Shown here in pieces: positions 4,614 through 62,408 of a stretch of 64,000 nt of DNA. The notes beneath the pieces were generated by a model that did no database searches, was not told where the DNA came from, and saw only the letters and a list, made by a program, of their open reading frames with translations. Position 1 is the first letter of the stretch. The number at the start of each line of letters is the position of its first letter. The position numbers and the translations under genes are program-made. Source of the DNA: Haliotis rufescens (lineage: Eukaryota); assembly GCF_023055435.1 (NCBI RefSeq), contig NW_025964383.1, positions 48,732,001 to 48,796,000 of the forward strand, given 5' to 3'.

Positions 4614-4665
4614 ATGTGGCCTTTTGGGGTTACAGTGATTGCATGGATGCTTATCCCCACACAAG
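4614..4665 (+). CDS. Gene A coding exon 1: signal peptide of SCARF/MEGF-like EGF receptor
   Basis: Pyrimidine tract+AG at 4605-6, ATG 4614, MWPFGVTVIAWMLIPTQ-G, donor GTAAG 4666 (phase 1); 52 coding nt, as in gene C exon 1. Confidence 0.8.
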
Positions 4666-5204
4666 GTAAGCAGATTAGTAATCTATATACATTGTGCTAC
4701 ATGAGGTAGGGCATCGTAAAGTGGGTCGCTTGTTGGCAGCGCTTCCAGAATGTTGACATTATTATTAAATTAGTTGATAAAAAACTATGCTCTTTGACGG
4801 TGTCACTCCAGCAAGAATAGACAATGCATTTGATGTCTTTGATGTCTAGTGTATATATAATTGACCCGTTTAAGATACAAATGTTTGATAACAATAATTG
4901 GTATTACTAAATAGCAAGGCGCGAGCGTCTGTAGTGCAGGGACAAGTTTCAATGACAAATACTGAAATCTCCCAACATCGATGGGCTTATTCAATGAGAT
5001 TGTGTGGAGATATAATAGATCGCTGAGAGGAACTTATGCACAACCTCTCCTTGGGCTGGCATCACATGGCATTGTTTAGCGGTGGCTGTTGCTACAATTA
5101 AAGTATGATGATATGGTCTGAGTCGTACAGTGGACTCTGACTTTTAATAGAAGAGATACGTTATGACTAAGGAAATTGTTTTGGTAGCTTTTATTTATTC
5201 TCAG

Positions 5205-6203
5205 GTGGTAAATGTTCCTATAACCAGCACTGCTCCGAGTGTGAGGACCAGACAGGTCGATGCAGCACCAACTGCTCTAAAGGATATTTCGGCCCAAAGT
5301 GCATGGATGTTTGCAGCAGAAGGTGCAGGTACCACACATGTCAGCTGCACCTCGACAGGGGGATTGGGAGATGTACTGATGGCTGCATACCAGGATTCCA
5401 AGGCCCAAACTGCCAGAGACCATGTTACACTCACCAGGTAGACTGTACCAGATGCCCAGGTGGATGTGATGGGAAGTATTGCCAGATGGGTGGAACTTGT
5501 TTCTCTGGCTGCAGCGACTCATACTACGGAGAAGGATGTAGGACGTGTTCCAGCAGATGCAAGTCCTGCAACAGGATCACAGGAACATGTGAGGAGTGTC
5601 AGCCTCCATATTCTGGACTGGACTGTAGATCCTCGTGTGAGCACTGTGTCGGTGGATGTGAGAGTGGCTGCCAACAGGGATGCAGACAAGGATTCTATGG
5701 AGACAACTGTACTGAAGCATGCAGTGACACCTGCCGAGCTGATCCCTCCCTGTCTACTGATGAACGATGTCCTGAGGGAGACTCATGTACCCCAGAGTGC
5801 CACAGCCAGACTGGCGAGTGTGTTCACGGTTGTGTAGATGGCTGGTACGGCCCGAAGTGTTCAAGGCGATGCAACCCTAAATGCACCCATCAAAGGTGCA
5901 ACCGCGCAGGTGCGTGTATTGAAGGATGTGCACCTGGACATGTCAGGTCTGATTGTGAACTGTGTCTGCAGCAATGCCTCAACCTCACCTGTGCCTTAAA
6001 CAACGGATCTTGTTGCAATGGTTGCAGCAGTGGTTTATTGGTAGAAAGCTGCAACCTATCTTGCAACGTATGTCTGGGTGGTATTGTTGGTATGAACACA
6101 AGTGTATGTATACTTGTGAAGAATATCACTCAATACATGTGTGGGTATAACTGTACAAACAACGGCTCATCACCTAGTTGCTCTGCCGGATCTTGTGTTA
6201 CAG
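5205..6203 (+). CDS. Gene A exon 2: multi-EGF-like (SCARF1/MEGF10-type) ectodomain
   Basis: Acceptor TTTATTCTCAG; open frame GKCSYNQHC...CxxGYFGPKC...GWYGPKC...SCVT continuous with ORF 5303-6217; donor GTAAGT 6204, phase 1-1. Confidence 0.93.
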
Positions 6204-6675
6204 GTAAGTCATGCTGATTGGTCTGACATATCGCTTGTTAATACTGATCTGGATTTTTTGGGTTCTTCTTTAATGTTTATCATAACAGCAGTAGTTGTTT
6301 CTGAAACGAAATGTTGAGAAATATTATCATAAAATTCCAAGTCAATATAAAGGTATTCTGAAATGTCACATTGGGAACTGTCTATGGGGGATTGTGAAAC
6401 ATGAAAGCAGTGATTGTGTTGCCTTGGTAATGTGTACTGTGTATTTTGAAAAAAACCCATTTACTTTATTCATGGTTTGAGATAAAGTTAATTAATTTAT
6501 CTTTTCTGAAAATAGATAATGCACCCTAAAACATTCAGAAAGACTTCAAATCAATTTCATGCACGGCGCACAATTTAGATGTTTGCCTGTTTGTAGGGAC
6601 AATAATACTCACTCATGTGGTCTTTGAATGTGAACAGCGCATAATGACCATTCAGCTGTCAGGTGCTCATACGCA

Positions 6676-7559
6676 TTGCCACTCCTTGCTGCAAATAGTC
6701 GCACCGTCGAGATGCTGCAAACAGGAATGGCACAAAAGGAATTTCAGTGTTCAACAAAACACAATATCAGACGTTATCTTCAGCAGGGCAACGCTTATTA
6801 CTTACGTATTAGTCGCCAACAAGTGACGCCATGTCAACAAGACAGCTATATGTGTTTGATGCATTCACGGAATCGATACCAACCTGCCACATTAGCAGCT
6901 CGGACAATTCCTAGGTGGACAGAAAGTAATGGCAGAGCCTTATTGAACCGTCGATACACACAGTAGTGCTTCCGAGCTCGGTGTAGCCAGTAGCTGAGGT
7001 TCGGAAGACAAAACAGGGGCAGTATACTATTCGCAGATGAGTCCAGGTGTCATCTGGACAGCTCTGATGGTCGTGCAAGGGTCTGCTAGCAGGAGGACGT
7101 CGTAAGGACATTTGTGTTACGCAACGTCGTCAGTTTGGGGGTGGAGGTGTAAGGGTGTGGGGTGGCATCACAACTCAAAGGAGAACGTATCTCATCATTG
7201 TTAATGGCAACTTGAATGGGGTACGCTGCCGGGACAACATCGTTCAAGGGCATGTTTCACCCTTCGTCCAAACACAGTGACGTGACGTCACGTTGCAAAA
7301 GGAAAATGCCCCCCCCACACGTTGCACATGTTGTAACAGGATTTTTGAAGCAGCATAACATTGTAACACAGGCCTGGGATGAGATAGGGGACGCCTACGA
7401 CAGGACCCGAACGAGCCTGTAATGCTAGCTCAGTAAAACCAGTATTTGATTTACATGTGGAACAACATCCCCAATCATGTTTTCAATCATGTGGTGTCTT
7501 CAGTTCGCCCCCGCTGCCTCGCATGTATCAACGCACACGGTGGTGTTGCACGATATTGA
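6676..7559 (+). mobile_element. Decayed Tc1/mariner transposase (pseudogene) in gene A intron 2
   Basis: N-terminal MLQTGMAQ...RNRYQPATLAARTIP (Tc1 HTH region), ILFADESR (first catalytic D), FGGGGVRVWGGI, QKENAPPH (QDNARPH-like), AWDEIG, C-terminal RCLACINAHGGVARY*; several stops and frameshifts. Confidence 0.88.
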
Positions 7560-7849
7560 CATTATTAAGTGAGCTGTTTTCTTTTCGGACGTGCCTCTCT
7601 TTGGTGTGGATTTTGTCAATGAATGTGTTATGATTCAGACGGTCGACCAAATATTATGCTGTTATTTTAAATAAGAACATTTACACTACTTTTCATGAAG
7701 CACAGTTACCTTTTCCCGTCAGCATGCCCATTGTAGGAAGTAAAAACTGAAAAAGGCCCTGAACATATCTGATCAATATTTAAAAAATGTACAGAATTGA
7801 CATTTTCAGAAATAGTATTGTACCGACGTAAGTTGTTTATTTCTTTCAG

Positions 7850-7964
7850 ACTCTTCACCAATCGACACAGAGACTGTGAAGTACCTGGTGGTGTTTGTCA
7901 TCTGCATCCTGGCAGCAAGTACAGTTGGCTACTGCTGCTACCGCAGAGGTCTCTCAGCCAAAAT
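7850..7964 (+). CDS. Gene A exon 3: transmembrane exon
   Basis: Acceptor TTTCTTTCAG; DSSPIDTETVKYLVVFVICILAASTVGYCCYRRGLSAK; donor GTACGT 7965; phase 1-2, 115 nt (same length as gene C TM exon). Confidence 0.85.
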
Positions 7965-8154
7965 GTACGTTATATCGCGATCATCACGACTAATTAAACG
8001 ACCATTAAACAAATTGATCAAATTGAATCAGACACTCGTCGTATCTTATTATGGTTTTAGAAAAGATCGGTCGCAATCACCTCCATTAAGTAAACCACTT
8101 TTAAGCGATGAAATTAATTCAGGAAACTATAACTTGTTGTTCATCCAATTTTAG

Positions 8155-8302
8155 AGAGGATACGGGTTCACAGACCGGGACAGAACAACCTGAATCACGC
8201 ACCTGCCACCACAGTCAACGGGACATACAGGGTGACCAGTCCGAACACATTTATGATGACACCGATGAAGAGGACACGGGACCAGTCATTGTATATCTTT
8301 AA
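8155..8302 (+). CDS. Gene A exon 4: acidic cytoplasmic tail with tyrosine motif, stop
   Basis: Acceptor ATTTTAG, phase 2 fits; EDTGSQ...SEHIYDDTDEEDTGPVIVYL*; AATAAA at 8330-8335. Joined CDS 1314 nt = 437 aa. Confidence 0.8.
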
Positions 8303-8523
8303 TTCAGCATGTGAGACTATTCAGAAAGCAATAAAAATATTCTTCATTTTCTGTCGACACAAAATGATCACTAGTAGCATTTATTAGAATGGCGCATAAG
8401 ACGCTTTTTTTCATTTCGTGGAAAAAAACTGATTTGGTATCATGAAGTGACATGCTTCATCAATATCAAGGCCAGTGACACCAGTTAGGCTTCACATATT
8501 AAACCCATTTGAGGACTTGAAAC

Positions 8524-8751
8524 CGGTGTCCCAGGCTTAACCTTCCCCAGGCCAGCTCTTCTCCTAGAACAGTTCTCCTCCGGTGACGACATTGCCTGGA
8601 CTGAAACTTCCCTGGCGAAGGTATATCCTTGGCCAGATCTCTACACTCAATTCGAGGGATTAAAGTCTGGCCAGGGTGGAGGAAAACTGGCCAAGGCTTT
8701 TACTTCCTCCGGGAAGACCTGGCCAGGGGCATGTTTCGGCCTTTCACACCG
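8524..8751. mobile_element. MITE-like non-autonomous element with imperfect TIRs
   Basis: Left CGGTGTCCCAGGCTTAACCTTCCCCAGGCCAG is an imperfect inverted repeat of right CTGGCCAGGGGCATGTTTCGGCCTTTCACACCG; internal repeated CTGGCCA motifs. Confidence 0.65.
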
Positions 8752-8803
8752 TCCTTTTGTGTGATGAGAGGGCGGTTTAAATCACTAGGCTACCCCAACG
8801 CCG

Positions 8804-11800
8804 AACAACACTTGTACTTACAGATAATACAACACTTGTACTTACAGACAACACAACACTTGTACTTACAGACAACACAACACTTGTACTTACAGACAAC
8901 ACAACACTTGTACTTACAGACAACACAACACTTGTACTTACAGACAACACAACACTTGTACTTACAGACAACACAACACTTGTACTTACAGACAACACAA
9001 CACTTGTACTTACAGACAACACAACACTTGTACTTACAGACAACACAACACTTGTACTTACAGACAACACAACACTTGTACTTACAGACAACACAACACT
9101 TGTACTTACAGACAACACAACACTTGTACTTACAGATAATACAACACTTGTACTTACAGACAACACAACACTTGTACTTACAGACAACACAACACTTGTA
9201 CTTACAGATAATACAACACTTGTACTTACAGACAACACAACACTTGTACTTACAGACAACACAACACTTGTACTTACAGACAACACAACACTTGTACTTA
9301 CAGACAACACAACACTTGTACTTACAGACAACACAACACTTGTACTTACAGACAACACAACACTTGTACTTACAGACAACACAACACTTGTACTTACAGA
9401 CAACACAACACTTGTACTTACAGCCAACACAACACTTGTACTTACAGACAACACAACACTTGTACTTACAGACAACACAACACTTGTACTTACAGACAAC
9501 ACAACACTTGTACTTACAGACAACACAACACTTGTACTTACAGACAACACAACACTTGTACTTACAGACAACACAACACTTGTACTTACAGACAACACAA
9601 CACTTGTACTTACAGACAACACAACACTTGTACTTACAGACAACACAACACTTGTACTTACAGACAACACAACACTTGTACTTACAGACAACACAACACT
9701 TGTACTTACAGACAACACAACACTTGTACTTACAGACAACACAACACTTGTACTTACAGATAATACAACACTTGTACTTACAGACAACACAACACTTGTA
9801 CTTACAGATATATACAACACTTGTACTTACAGACAACACAACACTTGTACTTACAGACAACACAACACTTGTACTTACAGACAACACAACACTTGTACTT
9901 ACAGACAACACAACACTTGTACTTACAGACAACACAACACTTGTACTTACAGACAACACAACACTTGTACTTACAGACAACACAACACTTGTACTTACAG
10001 ACAACACAACACTTGTACTTACAGACAACACAACACTTGTACTTACAGACAACACAACACTTGTACTTACAGATAATACAACACTTGTACTTACAGACAA
10101 CACAACACTTGTACTTACAGACAACACAACACTTGTACTTACAGATAATACAACACTTGTACTTACAGACAACACAACACTTGTACTTACAGATATATAC
10201 AACACTTGTACTTACAGACAACACAACACTTGTACTTACAGACAACACAACACTTGTACTTACAGACAACACAACACTTGTACTTACAGACAACACAACA
10301 CTTGTACTTACAGACAACACAACACTTGTACTTACAGACAACACAACACTTGTACTTACAGATAATACAACACTTGTACTTACAGACAACACAACACTTG
10401 TACTTACAGATATATACAACACTTGTACTTACAGACAACACAACACTTGTACTTACAGACAACACAACACTTATACTTACAGACAACACAACACTTGTAC
10501 TTACAGACAACACAACACTTGTACTTACAGACAACACAACACTTGTACTTACAGACAACACAACACTTGTACTTACAGATAATACAACACTTGTACTTAC
10601 AGACAACACAACACTTGTACTTACAGACAACACAACACTTGTACTTACAGATAATACAACACTTGTACTTACAGACAACACAACACTTGTACTTACAGAT
10701 ATATACAACACTTGTACTTACAGACAACACAACACTTGTACTTACAGACAACACAACACTTGTACTTACAGACAACACAACACTTGTACTTACAGATAAT
10801 ACAACACTTGTACTTACAGACAACACAACACTTGTACTTACAGATATATACAACACTTGTACTTACAGACAACACAACACTTGTACTTACAGATATATAC
10901 AACACTTGTACTTACAGATATATACAACACTTGTACTTACAGACAACACAACACTTGTACTTACAGACAACACAACACTTGTACTTACAGACAACACAAC
11001 ACTTGTACTTACAGACAACACAACACTTGTACTTACAGATATATACAACACTTGTACTTACAGACAACACAACACTTGTACTTACAGATATATACAACAC
11101 TTGTACTTACAGATATATACAACACTTGTACTTACAGACAACACAACACTTGTACTTACAGATAATACAACACTTGTACTTACAGACAACACAACACTTG
11201 TACTTACAGACAACACAACACTTGTACTTACAGATAATACAACACTTGTACTTACAGACAACACAACACTTGTACTTACAGATATATACAACACTTGTAC
11301 TTACAGACAACACAACACTTGTACTTACAGACAACACAACACTTGTACTTACAGACAACACAACACTTGTACTTACAGACAACACAACACTTGTACTTAC
11401 AGACAACACAACACTTGTACTTACAGACAACACAACACTTGTACTTACAGATAATACAACACTTGTACTTACAGACAACACAACACTTGTACTTACAGAT
11501 ATATACAACACTTGTACTTACAGACAACACAACACTTGTACTTACAGACAACACAACACTTATACTTACAGACAACACAACACTTGTACTTACAGACAAC
11601 ACAACACTTGTACTTACAGACAACACAACACTTGTACTTACAGACAACACAACACTTGTACTTACAGATAATACAACACTTGTACTTACAGACAACACAA
11701 CACTTGTACTTACAGACAACACAACACTTGTACTTACAGATAATACAACACTTGTACTTACAGACAACACAACACTTGTACTTACAGATATATACAACAC

Positions 11801-23595: not shown

Positions 23596-23629
23596 ATGTT
23601 GCGACACGGTCTGCTGACCTCTTTATTTG
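23596..23629 (+). CDS. Gene B coding exon 1: signal peptide start (EGF-TM-ankyrin receptor)
   Basis: Strong acceptor TTCTTCTCTCTCACCCAG; ATG 23596 MLRHGLLTSLF-G; donor GTGAGT 23630, phase 1. Confidence 0.8.
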
Positions 23630-23929: not shown

Positions 23930-24217
23930 GAGTGGGCGTATTGGGCGTACTGGGCCAGGAGTGTCCAGTGGGCAAATATGGAGAACACTGTCAACTGAAC
24001 TGCAGCCGTTCCTGTTTCCCCCATTCCGGCCAGGATGTGCACTGTGACAGACACAGTGGTAGATGCTCTGAGGGATGCGTGGCTGGACGGTTTGGTGCTC
24101 AGTGCCAACTCCCCTGCAGCAGGAACTGCCGGGGACACATCTGCAATCACCAGACCGGCCAGTGCACCCAGGGCTGTACAGGACACAATACGGGGGATTT
24201 CTGTGAAATACACCAAG
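23930..24217 (+). CDS. Gene B exon 2: rest of signal peptide plus short EGF-like ectodomain (14 Cys)
   Basis: Acceptor CTCCTTTTTCAG; VGVLGVLG-QECPVGKYGEHC...GRFGAQC...GDFCEIHQ; donor GTATGT 24218; phase 1-1. Confidence 0.92.
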
Positions 24218-25537: not shown

Positions 25538-25703
25538 AAAATGATCAGAAAGGTAATGACAACGGGAGGTCTGTAAATAAGACGGCTGAGTGGAGAAGAT
25601 CAGAACAGACTGCACCAACACCAATGGTTGCGATACTTGTCCCTGTGTTCGTCACAATCTTTCTGATAATCGGCGTCATCGTCACAGTGATTGTCTACAG
25701 AAG
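25538..25703 (+). CDS. Gene B exon 3: stalk and transmembrane helix
   Basis: Acceptor TTTTATTACAG; ENDQKG...TAPTP-MVAILVPVFVTIFLIIGVIVTVIVY-RR; donor GTACGA 25704; phase 1-2. Confidence 0.88.
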
Positions 25704-26100: not shown

Positions 26101-29100
26101 CACCACAAGGACAGTGTAGGTATAGTGCAAGTGCAGAGAGGTGACATATCAGCCAACACACCATCAGGACAGTGTAGGTATAGTGCAAGTGCAGAGAGGT
26201 GACATATCAGCCAACACACCATCAGGACAGTGTAGGTATAGTGCAAGTGCAGAGAGGTGACATATCAGCCAACACACCATCAGGACAGTGTAGGTATAGT
26301 GCAAGTGCAGAGAGGTGACATATCAGCCAACACACCATCAGGACAGTGTAGGTATAGTGCAAGTGCAGAGAGGTGACATATCCGCCAACACACAATCAGG
26401 ACAGTGTAGGTATAGTGCAAGTGCAGAGAGGTGACATATCAGCCAACACACCATCAGGACAGGAAGGGAAAAGTGCAAGTGCAGAGAGGTGACATATCAG
26501 CCAACACACCATCAGGACAGTGTAGGTATAGTGCAAGTGCAGAGAGGTGACATATCAGCCAACACACCATCAGGACAGTGTAGGTATAGTGCAAGTGCAG
26601 AGAGGTGACATATCAGCCAACACACCATCAGGACAGTGTAGGTATAGTGCAAGTGCAGAGAGGTGACATATCAGCCAACACACCATCAGGACAGTGTAGG
26701 TATAGTGCAAGTGCAGATAGGTGACATATCAGCCAACACACCATCAGGACAGTGTAGGTATAGTGCAAGTGCAGAGAGGTGACATAGCCAACACACCATC
26801 AGGACAGTGTAGGTATAGTGCAAGTGCAGAGAGGTGACATATCAGCCAACACACCATCAGGACAGTGTAGGTATAGTGCAAGTGCAGAGAGGTGACATAT
26901 CAGCCAACACACCATCAGGACAATGTAGGTATAGTGCAAGTGCAGAGAGGTGACATATCAGCCAACACACCATCAGGACAGTGTAGGTATAGTGCAAGTG
27001 CAGAGAGGTGACATATCAGCCAACACACCATCAAGACAGTGTAGGTATAGTGCAAGTGCAGAGAGGTGACATATCAGCCAACACACCATCAGGACAGTGT
27101 AGGTATAGTGCAAGTGCAGAGAGGTGACATATCCGCCAACACACAATCAGGACAGTGTAGGTATAGTGCAAGTGCAGAGAGGTGACATATCAGACAACAC
27201 ACCATCAGGACAGGAAGGGAAAAGTGCAAGTGCAGAGAGGTGACATATCAGCCAACACACCATCAGGACAGTGTAGGTATAGTGCAAGTGCAGAGAGGTG
27301 ACATATCAGCCAACACACCATCAGGACAGTGTAGGTATAGTGCAAGTGCAGAGAGGTGACATATCAGCCAACACACCATCAGGACAGTGTAGGTATAGTG
27401 CAAGTGCAGAGAGGTGACATATCAGCCAACACACCATCAGGACAGTGTAGGTATAGTGCAAGTGCAGAGAGGTGACATAGCCAACACACCATCAGGACAG
27501 TGTAGGTATAGTGCAAGTGCAGAGAGGTGACATATCAGCCAACACACCATCAGGACAGTGTAGGTATAGTGCAAGTGCAGAGAGGTGACATATCAGCCAA
27601 CACACCATCAGGACAATGTAGGTATAGTGCAAGTGCAGAGAGGTGACATATCAGCCAACACACCATCAGGACAGTGTAGGTATAGTGCAAGTGCAGAGAG
27701 GTGACATATCAGCCAACACACCATCAGGACAGTGTAGGTATAGTGCAAGTGCAGGGAGGTGACATATCAGCCAACACACCATCAGCACAGTGTAGGTATA
27801 GTGCAAGTGTAGGGAGGTGACATAGCCAACACACAATCAGGACAGTGTAGGTATAGTGCAAGTGCAGAGAGGTGACATATCAGCCAACACACCATCAGGA
27901 CAGGAAGGGAAAAGTGCAAGTGCAGAGAGGTGACATAGCCAACACACCATCAGGACAGTGTAGGTATAGTGCAAGTGCAGATAGGTGACATATCAGCCAA
28001 CACACCATCAGGACAGTGTAGGTATAGTGCAAGTGCAGAGGGGTGACATAGCCAACACACCATCAGGACAGAGTAGGTATAGTGCAAGTGCAGAGAGGTG
28101 ACATAGCCAACACACCATCAGGACAGTGTAGGTATAGTGCAAGTGCAGATAGGTGACATATCAGCCAACACACCATCAGGACAGTGTAGGTATAGTGCAA
28201 GTGCAGAGAGGTGACATATCAGCCAACACACCATCAGGAGAGTGTAGGTATAGTGCAAGTGCAGAGAGGTGACATATCAGCCAACACTCCATCAGGACAG
28301 TGTAGGTATAGTGCAAGTGCAGAGAGGTGACATATCAGCCAACACTCCATCAGGACAGTGTAGGTATAGTGCAAGTGCAGAGAGGTGACATATCAGCCAA
28401 CACACCATCAGGACAGTGTAGGTATGGTGCAAGTGCAGGGAGGTGACATATCAGCCAACACACCATCAGCACAGTGTAGGTATAGTGCAAGTGTAGGGAG
28501 GTGACATAGCCAACACACAATCAGGACAGTGTAGGTATAGTGCAAGTGCAGAGAGGTGACATATCAGCCAACACACCATCAGGACAGGAAGGGAAAAGTG
28601 CAAGTGCAGAGAGGTGACATATCAGCCAACACACCATCAGGACAGAGTAGGTATAGTGCAAGTGCAGAGAGGTGACATATCAGCCAACACACCATCAGGA
28701 CAGTGTAGGTATGGTGCAAGTGCAGGGAGGTGACATATCAGCCAACACACCATCAGCACAGTGTAGGTATAGTGCAAGTGTAGGGAGGTGACATAGCCAA
28801 CACACAATCAGGACAGTGTAGGTATAGTGCAAGTGCAGAGAGGTGACATATCAGCCAACACACCATCAGGACAGGAAGGGAAAAGTGCAAGTGCAGAGAG
28901 GTGACATAGCCAACACACCATCAGGACAGTGTAGGTATAGTGCAAGTGCAGATAGGTGACATATCAGCCAACACACCATCAGGACAGTGTAGGTATAGTG
29001 CAAGTGCAGAGGGGTGACATAGCCAACACACCATCAGGACAGAGTAGGTATAGTGCAAGTGCAGAGAGGTGACATAGCCAACACACCATCAGGACAGAGT

Positions 29101-31661
29101 AGGTATAGTGCAAGTGCAGGGAGGTGACATAGCCAACACACCATCAGGACAGTGTAGGTATAGTGCAAGTGCAGAGAGGTGACATAGCCAACACACCATC
29201 AGGACAGTGTAGGTATGGTGCAAGTGCAGAGAGGTGGCATATCAGCCAACACACCATCAGGACAGTGTAGGTGTAGTGTAAGTGCAGAAAGGTGACATAT
29301 CAGCCAACACACAATCAGGACAGTGTAGGTATAGTGCAAGTGCAGAGAGGTGAGATAGCCAACACACCATCAGGACAGTGTAGGTATAGTGCAAGTGCAG
29401 AGAGGTGACATATCAGCCAACACACCATCAGGACAGTGTAGGTATAGTGCAAGTGCAGAGAGGTGACATATCAGCCAACACACCATCAGGAGAGTGTAGG
29501 TATAGTGCAAGTGCAGAGAGGTGACATAGCCAACACACCATCAGGACAGTGTAGGTATAGTGCAAGTGCAGAGAGGTGACATATCAGCCAACACACCATC
29601 AGGACAGTGTAGGTATAGTGCAAGTGCAGAGAGGTGACATATCAGCCAACACACCATCAGGAGAGTGTAGGTATAGTGCAAGTGCAGAGAGGTGACATAT
29701 CAGCCAACACACCATCAGGACAGTGTAGGTATAGTGCAAGTGCAGAGAGGTGACATATCAGCCAACACACCATCAGGACAGAGTAGGTATAGTGCAAGTG
29801 CAGAGAGGTGACATATCAGCCAACACACCATCAGGACAGTGTAGGTATGGTGCAAGTGCAGGGAGGTGACATATCAGCCAACACACCGTCAGCACAGTGT
29901 AGGTATAGTGCAACTGTAGGGAGGTGACATAGCCAACACACAATCAGGACAGTGTAGGTATAGTGCAAGTGCAGAGAGGTGACATATCAGCCAACACACC
30001 ATCAGGACAGGAAGGGAAAAGTGCAAGTGCAGAGAGGTGACATAGCCAACACACCATCAGGACAGTGTAGGTATAGTGCAAGTGCAGATAGGTGACATAT
30101 CAGCCAACACACCATCAGGACAGTGTAGGTATAGTGCAAGTGCAGAGAGGTGACATATCAGCCAACACACCATCAGGACAGAGTAGGTATAGTGCAAGTG
30201 CAGAGAGGTGACATAGCCAACACACCATCAGGACAGTGTAGGTATAGTGCAAGTGCAGAGAGGTGACATAGCCAACACACCATCAGGACAGTGTAGGTAT
30301 GGTGCAAGTGCAGAGAGGTGGCATATCAGCCAACACACCATCAGGACAGTGTAGGTGTAGTGTAAGTGCAGAAAGGTGACATATCAGCCAACACACCATC
30401 AGGACAGTGTAGGTATAGTGCAAGTGCAGAGAGGTGACATAGCCAACACACCATCAGGACAGTGTAGGTATAGTGCAAGTGCAGAGAGGTGACATATCAG
30501 CCAACACACCATCAGGACAGTGTAGGTATAGTGCAAGTGCAGAGAGGTGACATATCAGCCAACACACCATCAGGAGAGTGTAGGTATAGTGCAAGTGCAG
30601 AGAGGTGACATAGCCAACACACCATCAGGACAGTGTAGGTATAGTGCAAGTGCAGAGAGGTGACATATCAGCCAACACACCATCAGGAGAGTGTAGGTAT
30701 AGTGCAAGTGCAGAGAGGTGACATATCAGCCAACACACCATCAGGACAGTGTAGGTATAGTGCAAGTGCAGAGAGGTGACATATCAGCCAACACACCATC
30801 AGGACAGTGTAGGTATAGTGCAAGTGCAGAGAGGTGACATATCAGCCAACACACCATCAGGACAGTGTAGGTATAGTGCAAGTGCAGAGAGGTGACATAT
30901 CAGCCAACCCACCATCAGGACAGTGTAGGTATAGTGCAAGTGCAGAGAGGTGACATATCAGCCAACACACCATCAGGACAGTGTAGGTATGGTGCAAGTG
31001 CAGGGAGGTGACATATCAGCCAACACACCATCAGCACAGTGTAGGTATAGTGCAAGTGCAGAGAGGTGACATAGCCAACACACAATCAGGACAGTGTAGG
31101 TATAGTGCAAGTGCAGAGAGGTGACATATCAGCCAACACACCATCAGGACAGGAAGGGAAAAGTGCAAGTGCAGAGAGGTGACATATCAGCCAACACACC
31201 ATCAGGACAGTGTAGGTATAGTGCAAGTGCAGAGAGGTGACATATCAGCCAACACACCATCAGGACAGTGTAGGTATAGTGCAAGTGCAGAGAGGTGACA
31301 TATCAGCCAACACACCATCAGGACAGTGTAGGTATAGTGCAAGTGCAGAGAGGTGACATATCAGCCAACACACCATCAGGACAGGAAGGGAAAAGTGCAA
31401 GTGCAGAGAGGTGACATATCAGCCAACACACCATCAGGACAATGTAGGTATAGTGCAAGTGCAGAGAGGTGACATATCAGCCAACACACCATCAGGACAG
31501 TGTAGGTATAGTGCAAGTGCAGAGAGGTGACATATCCGCCAACACACCATCAGGACAGTGTAGGTATAGTGCAAGTGCAGAGAGGTGACATATCAGCCAA
31601 CACACCATCAGGAGAGTGTAGGTATAGTGCAAGTGCAGAGAGGTGACATAGCCAACACACC
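26101..31661. repeat. 58-bp satellite in gene B intron 3
   Basis: Unit CAGGACAGTGTAGGTATAGTGCAAGTGCAGAGAGGTGACATATCAGCCAACACACCAT; 55-bp deletion variant and GGAAGGGAAAA variant; about 97 units. Confidence 0.98.
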
Positions 31662-31851
31662 TATGATAACAACAGCAGAAAGCAAGACAACGGGACCGGA
31701 AGCGAGGTATAACACACTTCCGCGTATCGTTGATTCTACACTTGATGAGACACGGAAAGTTGCGGGACATACGCAAACCAAGCAGCTTAATTCCCTTATC
31801 TACCGACTTTGCTTGTCAACGAATATGAAAGGCGAATACTGGATTCTCTGG

Positions 31852-33980
31852 TCCATCACGTGGTTGTCTGGTTTGTTTGGGGGCGGCGTCAGGCAACACA
31901 CAAACTCTTACATTTTTATACAAATTGTGTGAGTGGCGCATGGAACCGGCGGGGCAGGAACCTTGTCGTGGGCACCTGGTGTCATCACTGATTGTTAGTG
32001 CCCCATTCATACACAATGCACGTGCTACCGGCGGGGCGGGAACCTTGTCGTGGGCACCGGGTGTCATCACTGATTGTTAGTGCCCCATTCATACACAATG
32101 TACGTGCTACCGGCGGGGCGGGAACCTTATCGTGGGCACCGGGTGTCATCACTGATTGTTAGTGCCCCATTCATACACAATGTACGTGCTACCGGCGGGG
32201 CAGGAACCTTGTCGTGGGCACCTGGTGTCATCACTGATTGTTAGTGCCCCCTTCATACACAATGTACGTGCTACCGGCGGGGCGGGAACCTTGTCGTGGG
32301 CACCGGGTGTCATCACTGATTGTTAGTGCCCCCTTCATACACAATGTACGTGCTACCGGCGGGGCGGGAACCTTGTCGTGGGCACCGGGTGTCATCACTG
32401 ATTGTTAGTGCCCCCTTCATACACAATGTACGTGCTACCGGCGGGGCGGGAACCTTGTCGTGGGCACCGGGTGTCATCACTGATTGTTAGTGCCCCATTC
32501 ATACACAATGTACGTGCTACCGGCGGGGCGGGAACCTTGTCGTGGGCACCGGGTGTCATCACTGATTGTTAGTGCCCCATTCATACACAATGTACGTGCT
32601 ACCGGCGGGGCGGGAACCTTGTCGTGGGCACCGGGTGTCATCACTGATTGTTAGTGCCCCATTCATACACAATGTACGTGCTACCGGCAGGGCGGGAACC
32701 TTGTCGTGGGCACCGGGTGTCATCACTGATTGTTAGTGCCCCATTCATACACAATGTACGTGCTACCGGCGGGGCGGGAACCTTGTCGTGGGCACCGGGT
32801 GTCATCACTGATTGTTAGTGCCCCATTCATACACAATGTACGTGCTACCGGCGGGGCGGGAACCTTGTCGTGGGCACCGGGTGTCATCACTGATTGTTAG
32901 TGCCCCATTCATACACAATGTACGTGCTACCGGCGGGGCGGGAACCTTGTCGTGGGCACCGGGTGTCATCACTGATTGTTAGTGCCCCCTTCATACACAA
33001 TGTACGTGCTACCGGCGGGGCGGGAACCTTATCGTGGGCACCGGGTGTCATCACTTTAATGTTAGTGCCCCATTCATACACAATGTACGTGCTACCGGCG
33101 GGGCGGGAACCTTGTCGTGGGCACCTGGTGTCATCACTGATTGTTAGTGCCCCCTTCATACACAATGTACGTGCTACCGGCGGGGCGGGAACCTTATCGT
33201 GGGCACCGGGTGTCATCACTTTAATGTTAGTGCCCCATTCATACACAATGTACGTGCTACCGGCGGGGCGGGAACCTTGTCGTGGGCACCGGGTGTCATC
33301 ACTGATTGTTAGTGCCCCATTCATACACAATGCACGTGCTACCGGCGGGGCGGGAACCTTGTCGTGGGCACCGGGTGTCATCACTGATTGTTAGTGCCCC
33401 ATTCATACACAATGTACGTGCTACCGGCGGGGCAGGAACCTTGTCGTGGGCACCTGGTGTCATCACTGATTGTTAGTGCCCCATTCATACACAATGCACG
33501 TGCTACCGGCGGGGCGGGAACCTTGTCGTGGGCACCGGGTGTCATCACTGATTGTTAGTGCCCCATTCATACACAATGTACGTGCTACCGGCGGGGCGGG
33601 AACCTTGTCGTGGGCACCGGGCGTCATCACTGATTGTTAGTGCCCCATTCATACACAATGTACGTGCTACCGGCGGGGCAGGAACCTTGTCGTGGGCACC
33701 GGGTGTCATCACTGATTGTTAGTGCCCCATTCATACACAATGTACGTGCTACCGGCGGGGCGGGAACCTTGTCGTGGGCACCGGGTGTCATCACTGATTG
33801 TTAGTGCCCCATTCATACACAATGTACGTGCTACCGGCGGGGCGGGAACCTTGTCGTGGGCACCGGGTGTCATCACTGATTGTTAGTGCCCCATTCATAC
33901 ACAATGTACGTGCTACCGCTAGTTTGCCGTTTGTTCCCAATGGAATCTGTTTCGATGGATAATCAAGAAAACATTCAGGT
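31852..33980 (+). mobile_element. Dispersed repeat (family C composite) hosting the 82-bp satellite
   Basis: Both flanks of the array align with single-unit copies at 38848-39003 (+) and 40771-41010 (-). Confidence 0.7.
31946..33918. repeat. 82-bp GC-rich satellite, about 24 copies
   Basis: Unit ACCGGCGGGGCGGGAACCTTGTCGTGGGCACCGGGTGTCATCACTGATTGTTAGTGCCCCATTCATACACAATGTACGTGCT. Confidence 0.98.
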
Positions 33981-34105: not shown

Positions 34106-34135
34106 ACACAGAAAAGCAAGAAGAGGACAAACAAG
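34106..34135 (+). CDS. Gene B exon 4: basic juxtamembrane segment
   Basis: Strong acceptor TTTTCTTTCTTCTTACAG; HRKARRGQT; donor GTAAAA 34136; phase 2-2. Confidence 0.72.
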
Positions 34136-34479: not shown

Positions 34480-34487
34480 TTCGGCTG
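34480..34487 (+). CDS. Gene B exon 5: 8-nt microexon (TTCGGCTG)
   Basis: Acceptor GTTTTCTGTCATTTTGCAG and donor GTGAGT flank 8 nt that convert phase 2 to phase 1, as needed to reach the ankyrin exon. Confidence 0.62.
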
Positions 34488-35084: not shown

Positions 35085-35120
35085 ATGGACCCGTCCCTGA
35101 CGGAGAGACTTTACTTCCAG
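35085..35120 (+). CDS. Gene B exon 6: 36-nt linker exon
   Basis: Acceptor TCTCATTCACAG; DGPVPDGETLLP-G; donor CAG|GTAAGT; phase 1-1. Confidence 0.75.
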
Positions 35121-36052: not shown

Positions 36053-36636
36053 GAGAACAATGCAGTATGGACACCAGGCTGAGTAGTGCTTGTCATAAGG
36101 GAGATCTAAGCCTGGTTAAACAGATGTTATCTGAGAGCCCCGAGGACATCAACAAGCGCGGCCAGTGCGGGAGGACATCCGTGATGGCGGCAGTGTACCG
36201 AGGACATACACACATAGTGAAGTTACTTGTGAGTCGTGGAGGCGACCTGTCCCTCGTTGATGATAATGGCGACAACATCCTTCACTTGGCGTGTGGTGGA
36301 GGCCATGAGAGCACGGTGAGGTATCTCCTGTCACAGGACGTTCCAGACATCAACAGCAGAGGCCAGAAGGGAAAGACTCCCGTCATGACGGCAGCCTACA
36401 TCGGGTATAAAGAAATGTTTGACTTACTTGTTTTAAAAGGCGCTGATGTGTCACTCGTGGACAATGACGGCAATAACATCCTCCACCATGCTTGTAAGGG
36501 CGGGGATGTACAGATAGTGAAGTATGTCCTCTCGCAGGACAAGGTGAACATCAGCACAAAGAACAATGCTGGGCAAACAGCAGCCATGATAGCGAAACAC
36601 CACGGCCATAATTCACTGTGCAGTCTTCTGTTATGA
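36053..36636 (+). CDS. Gene B exon 7: cytoplasmic ankyrin-repeat domain (about 6 repeats), stop
   Basis: Acceptor CGTCACCAG, phase 1; GRTSVMAA, GDNILHLAC, GKTPVMTAA, GNNILHHAC, GQTAAMIA ankyrin motifs; AATAAA near 36986. Joined CDS 1146 nt = 381 aa. Confidence 0.93.
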
Positions 36637-39760: not shown

Positions 39761-39789
39761 TCACAGAATAGTTCATCCACGTGAAGGTG

Positions 39790-40309: not shown

Positions 40310-40361
40310 ATGAAGTTTGTGAAGCTCTTACTGCTGCTCTGTCAAGCTGCACACTCACCGG
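40310..40361 (+). CDS. Gene C coding exon 1: signal peptide
   Basis: Acceptor TTCTTTTCCAG; MKFVKLLLLLCQAAHSP-G; donor GTAAGA 40362, phase 1. Confidence 0.85.
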
Positions 40362-42226: not shown

Positions 42227-43192
42227 GTGCTCGATGTAGGGACAACCAGCAGTGTTCTGACTGTGATGACAACACCGCCAACTGCCTCACACAGTGCCAC
42301 AAAGGATACTTCGGCCAGACATGCAGATCCGTGTGCAGCAGTAACTGTAGGAATAACACCTGTCAGCTCATTGCCAGCAGAGGTATTGGTAGGTGCACTG
42401 AAGGCTGCGAGCCAGGATACCAGGGCTACAACTGCATCCGACCGTGTGGCCGCCACATTGTCACCTGTACACCATGTCCAGGTGGGTGTGACGGGAACTA
42501 CTGCCACATTGGCCGAACCTGTTATGAAGGATGTAAAGAGTCTTTCTACGGGTTAGAGTGTAAGACCTGTTCTGACGAATGCAAAGTTTGCAACAGAAAG
42601 ACAGGAATATGTGAGGAATGTCGTCCACCACATTTTGGTCCTAACTGTGAACACTCGTGCGTGAACTGTTTAGGTTCATGCGAGGATGGGTGTACCATTG
42701 GCTGTGTTCCTGGGTTCTATGGGAATTTCTGTACCGAGATTTGCAGCGAAGGTTGTCGACCTCCTTACTCCATCTATACAGTTGACGAGTGTCAGGCGGA
42801 TGATGTCAATCTGTCGGCCGACTGTAGACCTGAGTGTCACAACCAGAGTGGTGAATGTGTTTATGGTTGTTTAGATGGTTGGTATGGTCCACAGTGCTCC
42901 TCCCAGTGTAGCCCTCGCTGTGCACATCAACGTTGTGATGGTGTTGGAGATTGTGTAGAAGGATGTGTTGTTGGTCGGTGGGGCTCTAGCTGTGAGTCAT
43001 GTTCTGAGAATTGTCTCCATCAAGCGTGCCACACCAACAGCGGTCTGTGCCTGCATGGCTGCTCCAGCGGCCACCATGGGGAATACTGTAACCTGACTTG
43101 TACGTCGTGTTCAACTGACGGATGTCAGCAAACTGTCAACTGTACAAGCAACTATACACTACCAGAGGACCTTGCAGGATCTTTCAACACAA
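42227..43192 (+). CDS. Gene C exon 2: multi-EGF-like (SCARF1/MEGF10-type) ectodomain
   Basis: Acceptor TTCTGACAG; ARCRDNQQC... in frame with ORF 42331-43314; Cys pattern collinear with gene A exon 2; donor GTAAGT 43193; phase 1-1. Confidence 0.93.
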
Positions 43193-45308: not shown

Positions 45309-45423
45309 GCGCTGCAAGGACTGGTGAAACCCTGACAGTAACTGTGACAGTGATTGTGTTGTTTGTCCCCATCATCCTGGTGGCATGCTGTATCTGGTAC
45401 TGGAGACGCAGATATAAAAGAAG
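45309..45423 (+). CDS. Gene C transmembrane exon
   Basis: Acceptor TTTATTTGTCAG; AARTGETLTVTVTVIVLFVPIILVACCIWYWRRRYKR; donor GTCAGT 45424; phase 1-2, 115 nt. Confidence 0.9.
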
Positions 45424-45937: not shown

Positions 45938-46262
45938 ACAACACGAGAGCGAAGGGGCATTTGATGATATTCCCAGACGGAGGGACACCTCTTCAGCGGT
46001 GTACCAGACGATAGAGCTGTACTGGGAGATCAAAGACGAAGATATAGACATCCATATTCCCTCCCAGAACAAAGAAACTGCCGGTGAAGATGGTGACACT
46101 GATTTGCCTGTTTTAGCTGATTGCTATCCAGGAGGTGAAGCTGTTGATGAAGCTGGCGATGACGCACCAGGCACATCTACCAAGGATTACGGTCACTTGG
46201 AGAGGGGTGTTCACGTTGATCCGAAGATTGTTGTCAGCTATATATCTCCAGTGGACGATTAA
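45938..46262 (+). CDS. Gene C last exon: acidic cytoplasmic tail with YxxI/L motifs, stop
   Basis: Acceptor TTTGTTACAACAG, phase 2; QHESEG...VYQTIELYWEIKDED...DYGHL...VSYISPVDD*. Joined CDS 1473 nt = 490 aa with the microexon. Confidence 0.88.
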
Positions 46263-57510: not shown

Positions 57511-57833
57511 TCATTTTGAGTGATATATCATGTAATATTCACCACTAATGTGTCAGATAATCGAGACTGGTTATTCCCGGACGTTGACGTTGTATATTAG
57601 AAAGATGTCGCAAGCATGAACAAGATAAAGCTGCTTATCTTTATTGACATCGTTCCGGATTTGGATAAATTCAAACATTTGGCATCTGTCAGTCTGCGTC
57701 AAGGTCAGCTCATACAATTACTCCACTCATGAAAGCTTTTGATGTGAAAACAGAAATTGTGATAATTTTGAACGATTCCCTATCAATAGCATAAATAAAT
57801 AGAACGGCATGACTTGGTGTCGTTTCAGGAGCG

Positions 57834-57879
57834 ATGAATTCAGAACTGCTGATAATCCTCAATCTGTGCCTGACATTTG
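57834..57879 (+). CDS. Gene D coding exon 1: signal peptide start (paralogue of gene B)
   Basis: Acceptor CGTTTCAG; MNSELLIILNLCLTF; donor TTTG|GTAAGT (gene B: TTTG|GTGAGT), phase 1. Confidence 0.8.
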
Positions 57880-57896
57880 GTAAGTTGTAACATTCT

Positions 57897-59347
57897 GTTT
57901 GCTTGTCTAGGTCGGTTACACGTACTCAGTGTCCATGCTTGCTTGTCTAGGTCGGTTACACGTACTCAGTGTCCATGCTTGCTTGTCCAGGTCGGTTACA
58001 CGTACTCAGTGTCCATGTTTGCTTGTCTAGGTCGGTTACACGTACTCAGTGTCCATGCTTGCTTGTCCAGGTCGGTTACACGTACTCAGTGTCCATATTT
58101 GCTTGTCTAGGTCGGTTACACGTACTCAGTGTCCATGCTTGCTTGTCCAGGTCGGTTACACGTACTCAGTGTCCATGCTTGCTTGTCCAGGTCGGTTACA
58201 CGTACTCAGTGTCCATGCTTGCTTGTCTAGGTCGGTTACACGTACTCAGTGTCCATGCTTGCTTGTCTAGGTCGGTTACACGTACTCAGTGTCCATGCTT
58301 GCTTGTCTAGGTCGGTTACACGTACTCAGTGTCCATGCTTGCTTGTCTAAGTCGGTTACACGTACTCAGTGTCCATGCTTGCTTGTCTAGGTCGGTTACA
58401 CGTACTCAGTGTCCATGCTTGCTTGTCTAGGTCGGTTACACGTACTCAGTGTCCATGCTTGCTTGTCTAGGTCGGTTACACGTACTCAGTGTCCATGCTT
58501 GCTTGTCTAGGTCGGTTACACGTACTCAGTGTCCATGTTTGCTTGTCTAGGTCGGTTACACGTACTCAGTGTCCATGCTTGCTTGTCCAGGTCGGTTACA
58601 CGTACTCAGTGTCCATGCTTGCTTGTCCAGGTCGGTTACACGTACTCAGTGTCCATGCTTGCTTGTCTAGGTCGGTTACACGTACTCAGTGTCCATGCTT
58701 GCTTGTCTAGGTCGGTTACACGTACTCAGTGTCCATGCTTGCTTGTCTAGGTCGGTTACACGTACTCAGTGTCCATGCTTGCTTGTCTAGGTCGGTTACA
58801 CGTACTCAGTGTCCATGCTTGCTTGTCCAGGTCGGTTACACGTACTCAGTGTCCATGCTTGCTTGTCTAGGTCGGTTACACGTACTCAGTGTCCATGCTT
58901 GCTTGTCCAGGTCGGTTACACGTACTCAGTGTCCATGCTTGCTTGTCTAGGTCGGTTACACGTACTCAGTGTCCATGCTTGCTTGTCTAGGTCGGTTACA
59001 CGTACTCAGTGTCCATGCTTGCTTGTCTAGGTCGGTTACACGTACTCAGTGTCCATGCTTGCTTGTCCAGGTCGGTTACACGTACTCAGTGTCCATGCTT
59101 GCTTGTCTAGGTCGGTTACACGTACTCAGTGTCCATGCTTGCTTGTCCAGGTCGGTTACACGTACTCAGTGTCCATGCTTGCTTGTCCAGGTCGGTTACA
59201 CGTACTCAGTGTCCATGCTTGCTTGTCTAGGTCGGTTACACGTACTCAGTGTCCATGCTTGCTTGTCTAGGTCGGTTACACGTACTCAGTGTCCATGCTT
59301 GCTTGTCCAGGTCGGTTACACGTACTCAGTGTCCATGCTTGCTTGTT
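57897..59347. repeat. 40-bp satellite, about 36 copies, in gene D intron 1
   Basis: Unit GCTTGTCTAGGTCGGTTACACGTACTCAGTGTCCATGCTT. Confidence 0.98.
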
Positions 59348-59415
59348 CAGCACCTCCCCCCTGACGCACGGACCACGCCATGAGACGAGGCACAGGACAG
59401 GGAAGTTATCAGAAG

Positions 59416-59479
59416 GAATGTGAAAGTAACTGGTAGTCTGGTAATTGTGCTTGCGTGACTAAACTGGGGGAATTTCCCC
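59416..59479. promoter_or_regulatory. Candidate NF-kB site with adjacent IRF-like site
   Basis: GGGAATTTCC (59468-77) matches the kB consensus exactly; GAATGTGAAAGT (59416-27) is one mismatch from an IRF element. Motif match only. Confidence 0.3.
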
Positions 59480-59619
59480 AATGTCTTTGTGTCGGAAAGC
59501 ACGGCATATCCTATAGTTACGCCACCGCTGGTAAAGGGTTTGTGGGTGTTCTAGACGTGTATCTTCATGGTCGTATTGGCAGGGCGACAACACGTTTCAA
59601 CACGTGGTATTAGGCCGCC

Positions 59620-61890
59620 ATACAATGCATGATACAAAACACGATACACTACATCACATAAGACATGATACAGCGTGAGATACAATACATGATACAATAC
59701 ATGATACGATACACGATACAATACATGATACAATACATGACACCATACATGATACAATACATGATTCAATACATGGTGCAGGTACGATACAATATATGAT
59801 ACAATACATCATACATTACATGATACAATACATGGTGCAAAGTACGATACAATACATCATACAATACATCATACATTACATGATACAATACTTAATACAA
59901 TGTACGATACAGTAAATGATACAATACATGAAGCAAAATACGATACATTCATGATACAATACATCATACATGATACAATACTTGATACAATGTACGATAC
60001 AATACATGACACAATACCTGATACAATACATGATACAATGTACGATAAATACACGATACAATACATGATACTATACATCATACATTGCATGATACAATAC
60101 TTAATACAATGTACGATACAGTAAATGATACAATACATGATGCAAAATACGATACATTCATGATACAATACATCATACATGATACAATACTTGATACAAT
60201 GTACGATACAATACATGACACAATACCTGATACAATACATGATACAATGTACGATAAATACACGATACAATACATGATACTATACATGATACAATACAAT
60301 ATTACACTACACGATACAATACATGATACAATTTACGATAAATACATGATACAATAAATGAAACAATGCATGATAAAATACATAATACAATGTGCGATAC
60401 AATACATAATACAATGCACGATACAATACATGATACAGTGAACGATACAATACATGATACAATACATGATTCAATACATAATATAATGTGTGATACAATG
60501 CACGATGCAACGTACGATACAACACATGATGTAAAACATGACACAATACATTATACACTACATGATACAATACAATACATGATACAATATACGATACATT
60601 GTACGATACAATACATGCTACAATACATAATACAATGTGTGATACAATGCACGGTACAATACATGATGCAATACAATATTACAATACACGATACAATACA
60701 TGATACAAAACATGATACAATACACGATACAATACATGATACAATACATAATACAATGTGTGATACAATGCACGGTACAATACATGATACAATACATGAT
60801 GCAATACAATATTACAATACACGACACAATACATGATACAAAACATGATACAATACATGGTACAATACATGATACAATACACGATACAATACAATATAAC
60901 AATACACGATAAATACATGATACAATACATGATACAATACATAATACAATACATGACACAATTACGAAACAATACATGATACAATGTACGATACAACACA
61001 TGATACAACACATGATACGATACATCATACAATGTACTATACAATAGGTAATAAATTTACGATACAATACATGATACAATGTACGTTACAATACATGATA
61101 AAATGTACGATACAATACGTGATACAATGCAGGATACAATGCAAGATACAATCCATGATACACTGTACGATATAATACACAATACAATACATGATACAAT
61201 TTACGATACAATATATGATACAATACATGATACAGTGTAAGATACAAAACATGATACTATGTACGATAGAATACATTATACAATACACGATGCAATACAT
61301 GATTCAATGTACGATATAATACATGATGCAATGTACGATACAATAAATGCTGCACTACACGATACAATGTGCGATACAATACACGATACAAAACATGATG
61401 CAATACACGATACAATGTGCGATACAATACGCGATACAATGCATGATACAATATATGATACAATGCATGAAAGAATGTATGCTAGAATACATGATACAAT
61501 ACTCGATACGATGCATGATACAATGTGCAATGCAATACATGATACAATGTACAATACAATATATGATACAATGTACGATGCGATATATGATACAATACAT
61601 GATACAATGTACGATACAATAGATGAAACAATGTACGATACAATATATATTACAATACCTGATACAATGTACGATACAATACATGATACAGTGTACGATA
61701 CAATATATGACACAATGCATGATACATTGTACGATACAATCCATGATACAATTTCACGAAACAATACATGATACAGTACATGATACAATGTACGATACAA
61801 TACTCGATACAATACATGATACAATGTACGATACAATACGTGATACAATAATCGATGCACTACATGATGCAATAAACGATACAATACATG
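59620..61890. repeat. Degenerate ~12-bp (GATACAATACAT) minisatellite
   Basis: Diverged units; internal 209-bp duplication (59891 vs 60100). Confidence 0.95.
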
Positions 61891-62135
61891 ACGCCCTACA
61901 CTTGGCATGATAAAAAAACGTTCCCACTTTCAAGGGAAGTGAAAGTAGACTAAAGCATGTTTCATAGATTCGAGTCTATTAATCAAAAGGCGACTTGAGA
62001 CCAGAAGACATATGTTCATTTTATGTTCTTATCATGTATATCAGCCTTATATATCCATGCATCGTGTTGATGAATCGAGCAAGTTATTGCATTGTTTTGA
62101 CCGTTTTACTGGAATGTCTGTTTCTCCCCCTGCAG

Positions 62136-62408
62136 TGGTGTTCGGTGTATCGGGGAGCTGTGACCTAGGGACATATGGTCGGAACTGCGAGAAGAACTGC
62201 AGTCAGTACTGTGCCTCGGACATAGACGAGTATGTGCACTGTGATCAGTGGACTGGCCGTTGCTCTGAAGGGTGTGTTCCTGGCTGGTATGGTGGGACGT
62301 GTAACATTCCTTGCAGCAGCCACTGCAACAACAGGACCTGCAGCCAGCAAACTGGAAGCTGCACTCTGGGCTGCACAGAGAACCACACAGGGGATGACTG
62401 TGAGACAG
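62136..62408 (+). CDS. Gene D exon 2: short EGF-like ectodomain; rest of gene lies beyond the window or is lost
   Basis: Acceptor TTTCTCCCCCTGCAG; VVFGVSGSCDLGTYGRNC...VHCDQWTGRCSEGCV...GDDCET with 14 Cys collinear with gene B; ends CAG|GCATGT (GC donor, phase 1). Confidence 0.9.

Follow-up and report, generated by a model that had tools for sequence, protein, structure and literature searches.

Conserved adjacency and co-duplication of two EGF-type receptor genes in the red abalone Haliotis rufescens

Four genes in two alternating pairs

The window examined here, the whole 64,000-nt stretch at C605:48,732,001-48,796,000 of the red abalone Haliotis rufescens, carries four co-oriented genes on the plus strand, which we call A, B, C and D. 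A scripted exon check found every exon model open and phase-consistent. The genes are of two types that take turns along the DNA: A and C (A-type) encode predicted receptors with an ectodomain built of repeats that resemble epidermal growth factor (EGF), while B and D (B-type) encode predicted receptors that join a 14-cysteine EGF module, through a transmembrane (TM) helix, to cytoplasmic ankyrin repeats. The adjacency of A-type and B-type genes is conserved and the two have been duplicated together. We consider it likely that an old two-gene unit stands here in three consecutive copies, two of which lie in the window, and that it belongs to a large family expansion, seen here only in Haliotis.

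The likeness between the pairs extends from exon structure to spacing. Genes A and C have in common a 52-nt signal exon, an EGF exon of about 1 kb and a 115-nt TM exon, and their EGF exons are 51-54% identical (E = 2e-95); the EGF exons of B and D are 50% identical (E = 2e-29). The start-to-start distance is 35,696 nt from A to C and 34,238 nt from B to D, and the satellites lying between the genes belong to unrelated families with units of 24, 26, 58, 82, 36, 40 and 12 nt; tandem repeats make up 42% of the 214 kb around the window. The exons that the original prediction had described as shared by A and C, and the split signal peptide and 14-cysteine module shared by B and D, were all confirmed, as were the similar spacings across different satellite families. 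Its central claim, an old tandem duplication of two genes with the order kept, was borne out.

The predicted proteins are 437 (A), 381 (B), 485 (C) and 425 (D) amino acids long. In all four models the phases agree and the exons sum to a multiple of 3 nt; all acceptors are AG and all donors are GT, except for a GC after exon 2 of D (Table 1). The genes already exist as automatic RefSeq models. Indeed, B is identical, residue for residue, to RefSeq P0035 (XP_048246865.1, "palmitoyltransferase AKR1-like"), in which the microexon residues of B (..TSSAD..) are also present, and C is identical in the same way to P0310, which RefSeq names "MEGF10". For A, the database search returned no 100% protein match, the RefSeq relatives being 77-92% identical over exon 2; its four-exon plan is also found in the H. 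cracherodii orthologue P0005 and in the paralogue P0001. Exons were used singly in the searches, and full-length comparisons were made via the database proteins P0035, P0310, P0130 and P0005.

Gene D runs past the end of the window. It had been predicted that TM and ankyrin exons for D would lie beyond position 64000, and both were located there (Table 1). The TM exons of B and D are homologous, with the same phases, an EN[DE] start and a YRR end. Identity to the H. asinina D-type protein P0130 is 59% for the ankyrin exon assigned to D, compared with at most 45% for other nearby ankyrin exons, and 66% for the D EGF exon. The D intron that separates the TM exon from the basic exon is occupied by one 41-kb array of a 32-bp satellite (window-equivalent 65,427-106,415), while the corresponding B intron contains 58-mer and 82-mer arrays (window 26101-33918). 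D is without the microexon of B; the shift of phase for which B uses 30 + 8 nt is achieved in D by one exon of 32 nt. At the donor of D exon 2 the exon ends in CAG and the intron begins with GCATGT, compared with GTATGT in B; if this intron were left unspliced, the frame would close 9 codons on.

Table 1. Exons of genes A to D, with positions in the window or, past its end, in window-equivalent coordinates.
Feature	Position	Strand	Description
A exon 1	4614..4665	+	52 nt, ATG and signal peptide, ends in phase 1
A exon 2	5205..6203	+	999 nt, ~8 SCARF/MEGF-type EGF-like repeats
A exon 3	7850..7964	+	115 nt, stalk and TM helix
A exon 4	8155..8302	+	short cytoplasmic tail, HIYDD..., C-terminal GPVIVYL-stop
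B exon 1	23596..23629	+	ATG, first half of signal peptide; matches P0035
B exon 2	23930..24217	+	remaining signal peptide and 14-Cys EGF module
B exon 3	25538..25703	+	stalk and TM helix
B exon 4	34106..34135	+	30 nt, polybasic juxtamembrane stretch
B exon 5	34480..34487	+	8-nt microexon, holds ankyrin exon in frame
B exon 6	35085..35120	+	36 nt, linker
B exon 7	36053..36636	+	ankyrin-repeat cytoplasmic domain and stop; Pfam Ank_2, E 1.9e-51
C exon 1	40310..40361	+	52 nt, ATG and signal peptide; matches P0310
C exon 2	42227..43192	+	966 nt, EGF-like repeats, collinear with A exon 2
C exon 3	45309..45423	+	115 nt, TM exon
C exon 4	45938..46262	+	108-aa tail: YQTIELYWEIKDED, DCYPGG, DYGHL, SYISPVDD
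D exon 1	57834..57879	+	46 nt, ATG, first half of signal peptide
D exon 2	62136..62408	+	14-Cys EGF module; GC donor 62409-62410
D TM exon	window-equivalent 65146-65272	+	outside the window, 1.1 kb past its end
D basic exon	window-equivalent 106643-106674	+	32 nt, outside the window
D 72-nt exon	window-equivalent 107236-107307	+	72 nt, outside the window
D ankyrin exon and stop	window-equivalent 107732-108459	+	728 nt, outside the window, 44 kb past its end

Extent, lineages and age of the pair

The pattern does not stop at the window. On the plus strand the order is A-B, C-D, A-B, and the window covers the first two of these three consecutive pairs; the third has an A-type EGF exon at window-equivalent 129,500 with tail exons, followed by B-type EGF modules at 158,446 and 159,814 and a TM exon at 161,979. 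On the minus strand, over C605 47.97-48.70 Mb, the order reads A A B A B A B A B A B A A A A B A B A B B, with about nine A-B adjacencies. The further alternating A/B genes that had been predicted were thus found on both strands, but the alternation is imperfect, since it is interrupted by A-A-A-A runs and by B-only clusters. Immediately upstream of the window, the array on the minus strand gives way to that on the plus strand, at a minus-strand ankyrin-only array between divergent A-type genes. The long ankyrin-only open frames concerned, at C605:48720271-48729258 on the minus strand and thus 11.7 to 2.7 kb before the window starts, are flanked by the A-type gene P0001 (C605:48701871-48704783, minus strand) and by A, and no EGF exon was found for them.

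Searches of the genome with the A exon and the B exon each drew more than 1,000 candidates, and the best-scoring of these gave at least 135 and at least 150 matches, respectively. Among the scored matches, a B-type exon lies within 60 kb of 69 of the 85 A-type exons, at a median distance of 21 kb. The 69 linked A-type exons comprise 38 in tandem A->B layout, 11 in B->A, 19 head-to-head and one tail-to-tail. Heterotypic neighbours account for 91 of 145 adjacencies, compared with 73 ± 5 when labels were shuffled within clusters (p about 0.0004). The two members of a pair also diverge in step: when the identity of A-type exons to A is set beside that of the adjacent downstream B-type exons to B, the values are 87/83, 81/79, 76/74, 76/72, 56/51 and 55/49%. 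A different layout was observed at C46:2.89-3.33 Mb, where coordinates place at least six A-type (minus strand)/B-type (plus strand) pairs head-to-head; their EGF exons are only 2.2-2.7 kb apart, so that there would be room for a shared bidirectional promoter.

Identity matrices were built from the six A-type and seven B-type EGF exons in 304 kb of sequence. The A-type exons fell into {A, 48703, 48525} (71-78%), {48483, 48861} (86%) and C alone (~53%), and the B-type exons into {B, 48501} (75%), {48453, 48445, 48890, 48891} (65-84%) and D alone (~50%); throughout the 304 kb, every A group adjoins its own B group. Maximum-likelihood trees that included RefSeq proteins of other species gave the same three A and three B clades, with SH-aLRT values of 95-100, and in these trees A pairs with P0005 and B with P0184, both from H. 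cracherodii. The mirrored topologies anticipated for the A-type and B-type trees were therefore found at the level of lineages. A class 'A2' that had grouped C with the divergent minus-strand A-type genes was dropped, as both matrix and tree give C a lineage of its own.

These trees bear directly on how and when the unit spread. The A-then-B order has a single origin, after which it was copied as a block. Block copying gave rise to three pair lineages, namely A1-B1 with genes A and B, A2-B2 with genes C and D, and A3-B3; later segmental duplications together with one inversion built the array of about 0.9 Mb. Relatives from H. asinina fall inside the A1, C, B3 and D lineages, which are four of the six, and the splits of these lineages therefore predate the divergence of H. 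rufescens and H. asinina.

The ratio of nonsynonymous to synonymous substitution rates (dN/dS) of the EGF exons is 0.19-0.75, and the genes are therefore under constraint; strong exon-wide positive selection, for which these values would be too low, was not seen. Constraint speaks to the suggestion that the array consists mostly of decaying duplicates whose pattern has no present function. Such decay would be in keeping with the satellite that fills 42% of the 214 kb around the window, with the GC donor and 41-kb satellite intron of D, with the missing 100% protein match for A and with in-frame stops in several family members elsewhere. However, the four window models have intact splice sites and are open throughout, B and C are present as protein models in RefSeq, dN/dS remains at 0.19-0.75, and tail and C-terminal motifs are conserved across species, so we regard general decay as very unlikely.

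The history of gene A itself may be composite. The DNA of A and its paralogue P0001 (78% identical) aligns, at 87-88%, only over window 4530-4790 and 5198-6250, exon 1 being 88% identical, while TM exons, tail exons and introns cannot be aligned and the 3′ halves are unrelated. Because the homology is confined to the promoter/exon 1 region and the EGF exon, it suggests a mosaic origin or a gene conversion of the 5′ half of A.

The two predicted proteins

The A-type ectodomain consists of about eight C-x-x-G-[WFY]-x-G-x-x-C units, and the topology is type-I: there is a signal peptide, and basic residues follow the single hydrophobic helix. In both A and C the EGF-like repeats start 2-3 residues past the signal-peptide exon. 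In A exon 2 and in the complete C protein P0310 no Pfam family was recognised, and a phmmer search of A exon 2 against all PDB chains, SCARF1 fragments included, gave no hit at E <= 0.01. When an AlphaFold2 model of the A ectodomain (mean pLDDT 67) was compared with the PDB by Foldseek, the top match was 8HNA, human SCARF1 residues 20-221 (E 1.4e-5, prob 1.00); laminin-type EGF modules rank next, and TM-scores are low, as expected for rod-like repeats. The H. cracherodii protein P0005 is 92% identical to A in the ectodomain, with an identical TM segment and a related tail.

The original prediction had placed the A-type proteins among receptors of the SCARF1/MEGF10/CED-1/Draper type. The SCARF-like part of this label held, on fold and on the lack of an EMI domain. 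In contrast, A is not a member of the CED-1/Draper/MEGF10 group, because it has neither an EMI domain nor an NPxY motif. Judging from the modelled fold, SCARF-like is the better label.

The cytoplasmic tails of the A-type family come in three forms. The long form, as in C, follows the plan YxEI[RK]DED ... PVLADCF ... YxxL ... YxSPxxD; the short form, to which A belongs, combines one tyrosine in an acidic context with the C-terminal ending GP[VE]IV[FY]L; the third, seen in P0002 and P0003, is almost tail-less, with a stop ~10 residues past the membrane. In C the tyrosine motifs are YQTI, YWEI and YGHL. The two YxxI motifs stand 2 residues apart and the YxxL about 70 residues further, which is not the spacing of an immunoreceptor tyrosine-based activation motif (ITAM). 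Both H. asinina P0311 and the family at large have kept the tail motifs of C. The tail of A is 49 amino acids long and has two tyrosines (HIYDD and VIVYL), of which one is conserved, the second being a phenylalanine in the sister species; the case for the phosphotyrosine tail that had been proposed for A is accordingly weak. The conserved tyrosine motifs of the family (YxEI with an acidic cluster, and YxxL) are as compatible with sorting signals of the endocytic YxxPhi type as with SH2 sites. The GP[VE]IV[FY]L ending recurs in P0005, P0006, P0009, P0012, P0016, P0020 and P0026, and this conserved carboxy terminus is possibly a PDZ-type motif.

The B-type proteins have a plan of their own: a signal peptide, one or sometimes several 14-cysteine EGF modules, a TM helix, a polybasic stretch and a cytoplasmic ankyrin array. 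The proteins of this EGF-TM-ankyrin architecture that could be identified among the top matches are all from Haliotis. RefSeq names the B-types P0035, P0130, P0134, P0171 and P0184 AKR1-like, EHMT1-like, ANKRD50-like, Kidins220-like or RF_0381; the ankyrin repeats account for every one of these names, and the signal peptide-EGF-TM plan is expressed in none of them. We rejected the AKR1 palmitoyltransferase identity of B: in P0035 Pfam found ankyrin only, with no DHHC domain, and there is a single TM helix instead of a multi-pass topology. "AKR1-like" is thus a misnomer for B, as the name follows from its ankyrin repeats.

The two ends of the B-type protein evolve at different rates. The EGF modules of B and its H. 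cracherodii orthologue P0184 are 93% identical and their ankyrin domains 81%, and for B-type paralogues the corresponding values are 75% and 44%; the ankyrin domain changes faster than the extracellular EGF module. The number of ankyrin repeats varies as well, from about 5 in B to at least 9 in a close paralogue at C605:48494270-48495160.

The order of EGF, TM helix, polybasic stretch and ankyrin repeats is also that of Notch, and B could be imagined as a miniature Notch in which ligand-triggered cleavage sends the ankyrin part to the nucleus, A being either unrelated or its ligand. The nearest ESM-Atlas feature clusters are Notch proteins, with a score of 0.90, but a score of this size with 125 shared features is reachable by chance. 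The Pfam families of B (P0035) and of the D-type P0130 comprise ankyrin only, without LNR, NOD/NODP or RAM, and the number of ankyrin repeats differs between close paralogues, so that a binding platform fits better than a conserved transcription cofactor. B is therefore not a Notch protein, and we hold a Notch-like mechanism to be extremely unlikely.

A different relationship is indicated by the H. cracherodii protein P0143 (1623 amino acids), in which a B-type EGF module and TM helix precede an nSTAND3 nucleoside triphosphatase (NTPase) domain (E 1.1e-23) and an ankyrin array. It matches the B EGF exon at E 1.3e-16 and has Ank_2 matches in 15 stretches. Since P0143 carries the same head, the B-type proteins are linked to membrane-anchored STAND/NLR-like proteins. 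The NTPase itself was not found in B or D, nor within 304 kb around the cluster; in the H. rufescens genome at least 21 nSTAND3 matches of 351 candidates were obtained, and none scored near this cluster.

Reading of the paired order and known systems

From their domain architecture, both types would be cell-surface receptors for recognition or uptake. The A-type proteins, whose tail has a YxxI and acidic-cluster motif and, in the long forms, YxxL and YxSP, may serve as scavenger or endocytic receptors, and the B-type proteins may form a membrane-tethered ankyrin platform whose head is related to that of the abalone membrane-anchored STAND/NLR-like proteins. On this reading of old, block-duplicated pairs, the simplest account of the fixed A-B order is that it records block duplication, to which shared regulation may have been added; it does not prove a heteromeric receptor.

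The order could also mean that A and its neighbour B act together as a true paired receptor, either as a heterocomplex in cis or as a linked ligand-receptor couple. In the first form, a long EGF sensor with little or no tail would work with an ankyrin-tailed signalling partner; in the second, the couple would serve self/non-self or gamete recognition, and linkage would be kept for matched alleles or co-regulation. The adjacency does survive a protein divergence of ~50%, and it occurs in two layouts, in tandem at ~19-24 kb here and head-to-head on C46, although block duplication alone predicts the same order and mirrored trees, and the head-to-head set may stem from one inversion that was later copied. 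The A1 paralogues P0002 and P0003 would need a signalling partner, because they have almost no cytoplasmic tail. However, the TM helices of A and B are without the charged residue of the type that couples activating receptors to adaptors. The orthologues are unusually diverged, as in B and P0184, yet exon-wide dN/dS is below 1, and some runs are A-only and some clusters B-only. Binding between ectodomains of this kind has precedents: human SR-F1 and SREC-II bind via their ectodomains (PMC8487046), and Notch can bind the MEGF10-family receptor Draper directly (PMC13346508). Taken together, and with block duplication accounting for all that was observed, a true paired receptor appears doubtful.

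A more ambitious form of this idea, which we think unlikely, is that A and B make up an abalone-specific, massively diversified two-component surface recognition system whose partners bind in cis or from one cell to another. The intracellular specificity or signalling module would then be the fast-evolving ankyrin array, related to membrane-anchored STAND/NLR-like receptors, and linkage would be kept for the joint inheritance and expression of the partners, as in paired NLRs or self-incompatibility loci.

Several points weigh against our own account of an old pair multiplied by block duplication. The counts of adjacency are not independent events, because the copies are related by block duplication, and both the shuffle test and the alternation runs include such non-independent copies. 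Among the scored matches there are an A-only cluster (C605 at 15.5 Mb) and B-only clusters (C603 and C614), and of the more than 1,000 candidates in the genome searches, scores cover the best 121-150. Gene A may be unannotated or silent, given that no 100% protein match was returned for it, and D could be poorly expressed, on account of its GC donor and of the 41 kb of satellite in one intron. Finally, the putative functions of the A-type and B-type proteins are drawn from domain architecture alone.

Mollusc genomes show recurrent large lineage-specific expansions of EGF-repeat receptors of the scavenger or engulfment type, and we found no paper on an EGF-TM-ankyrin family in molluscs or on its pairing with SCARF-like genes. 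What is new here is a Haliotis SCARF-like gene that is systematically flanked by an undescribed EGF-TM-ankyrin architecture, which misleading RefSeq names had masked; that the two were copied as a unit, with four of six pair lineages already containing H. asinina relatives; and that the head of the second gene is common to NLR-like STAND proteins. The locus offers a candidate for an innate recognition module of two components in a mollusc of commercial and ecological importance, as well as a clean case of mirrored gene trees from block duplication. Should the pairing be only historical, the work would still provide a useful re-annotation of a large family.

Among known systems, the class F scavenger receptors SCARF1 (SR-F1/SREC-I) and SCARF2 (SREC-II) resemble the A-type proteins in being type-I receptors that consist of EGF-like repeats only, starting directly after the signal peptide, without an EMI domain, and the RefSeq pipeline of NCBI gives SCARF1-like names to many A-type genes. 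Human SCARF1 and SCARF2 have long cytoplasmic tails, whereas those of the A-type are ~10-110 amino acids long (49 in A, 108 in C, ~10 in some paralogues). The A-type family also differs in numbering more than 85 copies in one genome and in being flanked by ankyrin-tailed genes, an arrangement that we do not know of for SCARF1 or SCARF2. CED-1, Draper and MEGF10 are similar in their atypical EGF repeats and single TM helix, and, in the long-tail forms such as C, in the YxxI/YxxL motifs; unlike them, A and C have no N-terminal EMI domain, and their tails have neither NPxY nor ITAM spacing.

The B-type proteins share with Notch the extracellular EGF units, one TM helix, the basic juxtamembrane stretch and the cytoplasmic ankyrin repeats, but they lack LNR, NOD, RAM and PEST, have 2-3 EGF-like units as opposed to ~30, vary in ankyrin number and occur in dozens of copies per genome. 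With the membrane-anchored STAND/NLR-like P0143 they have in common an N-terminal 14-cysteine EGF module and TM helix and a C-terminal ankyrin array, and B and D differ from proteins of this kind by the lack of the NTPase. As for the arrangement of the genes, A and B recall linked paired receptor genes, in that two different receptor-type genes are adjacent and have been multiplied together, with one sub-cluster head-to-head. Such linked pairs include the head-to-head NLR pairs of plants, the activating/inhibitory receptor pairs of vertebrates and the self-incompatibility pairs, with which the abalone genes may be compared by analogy only.

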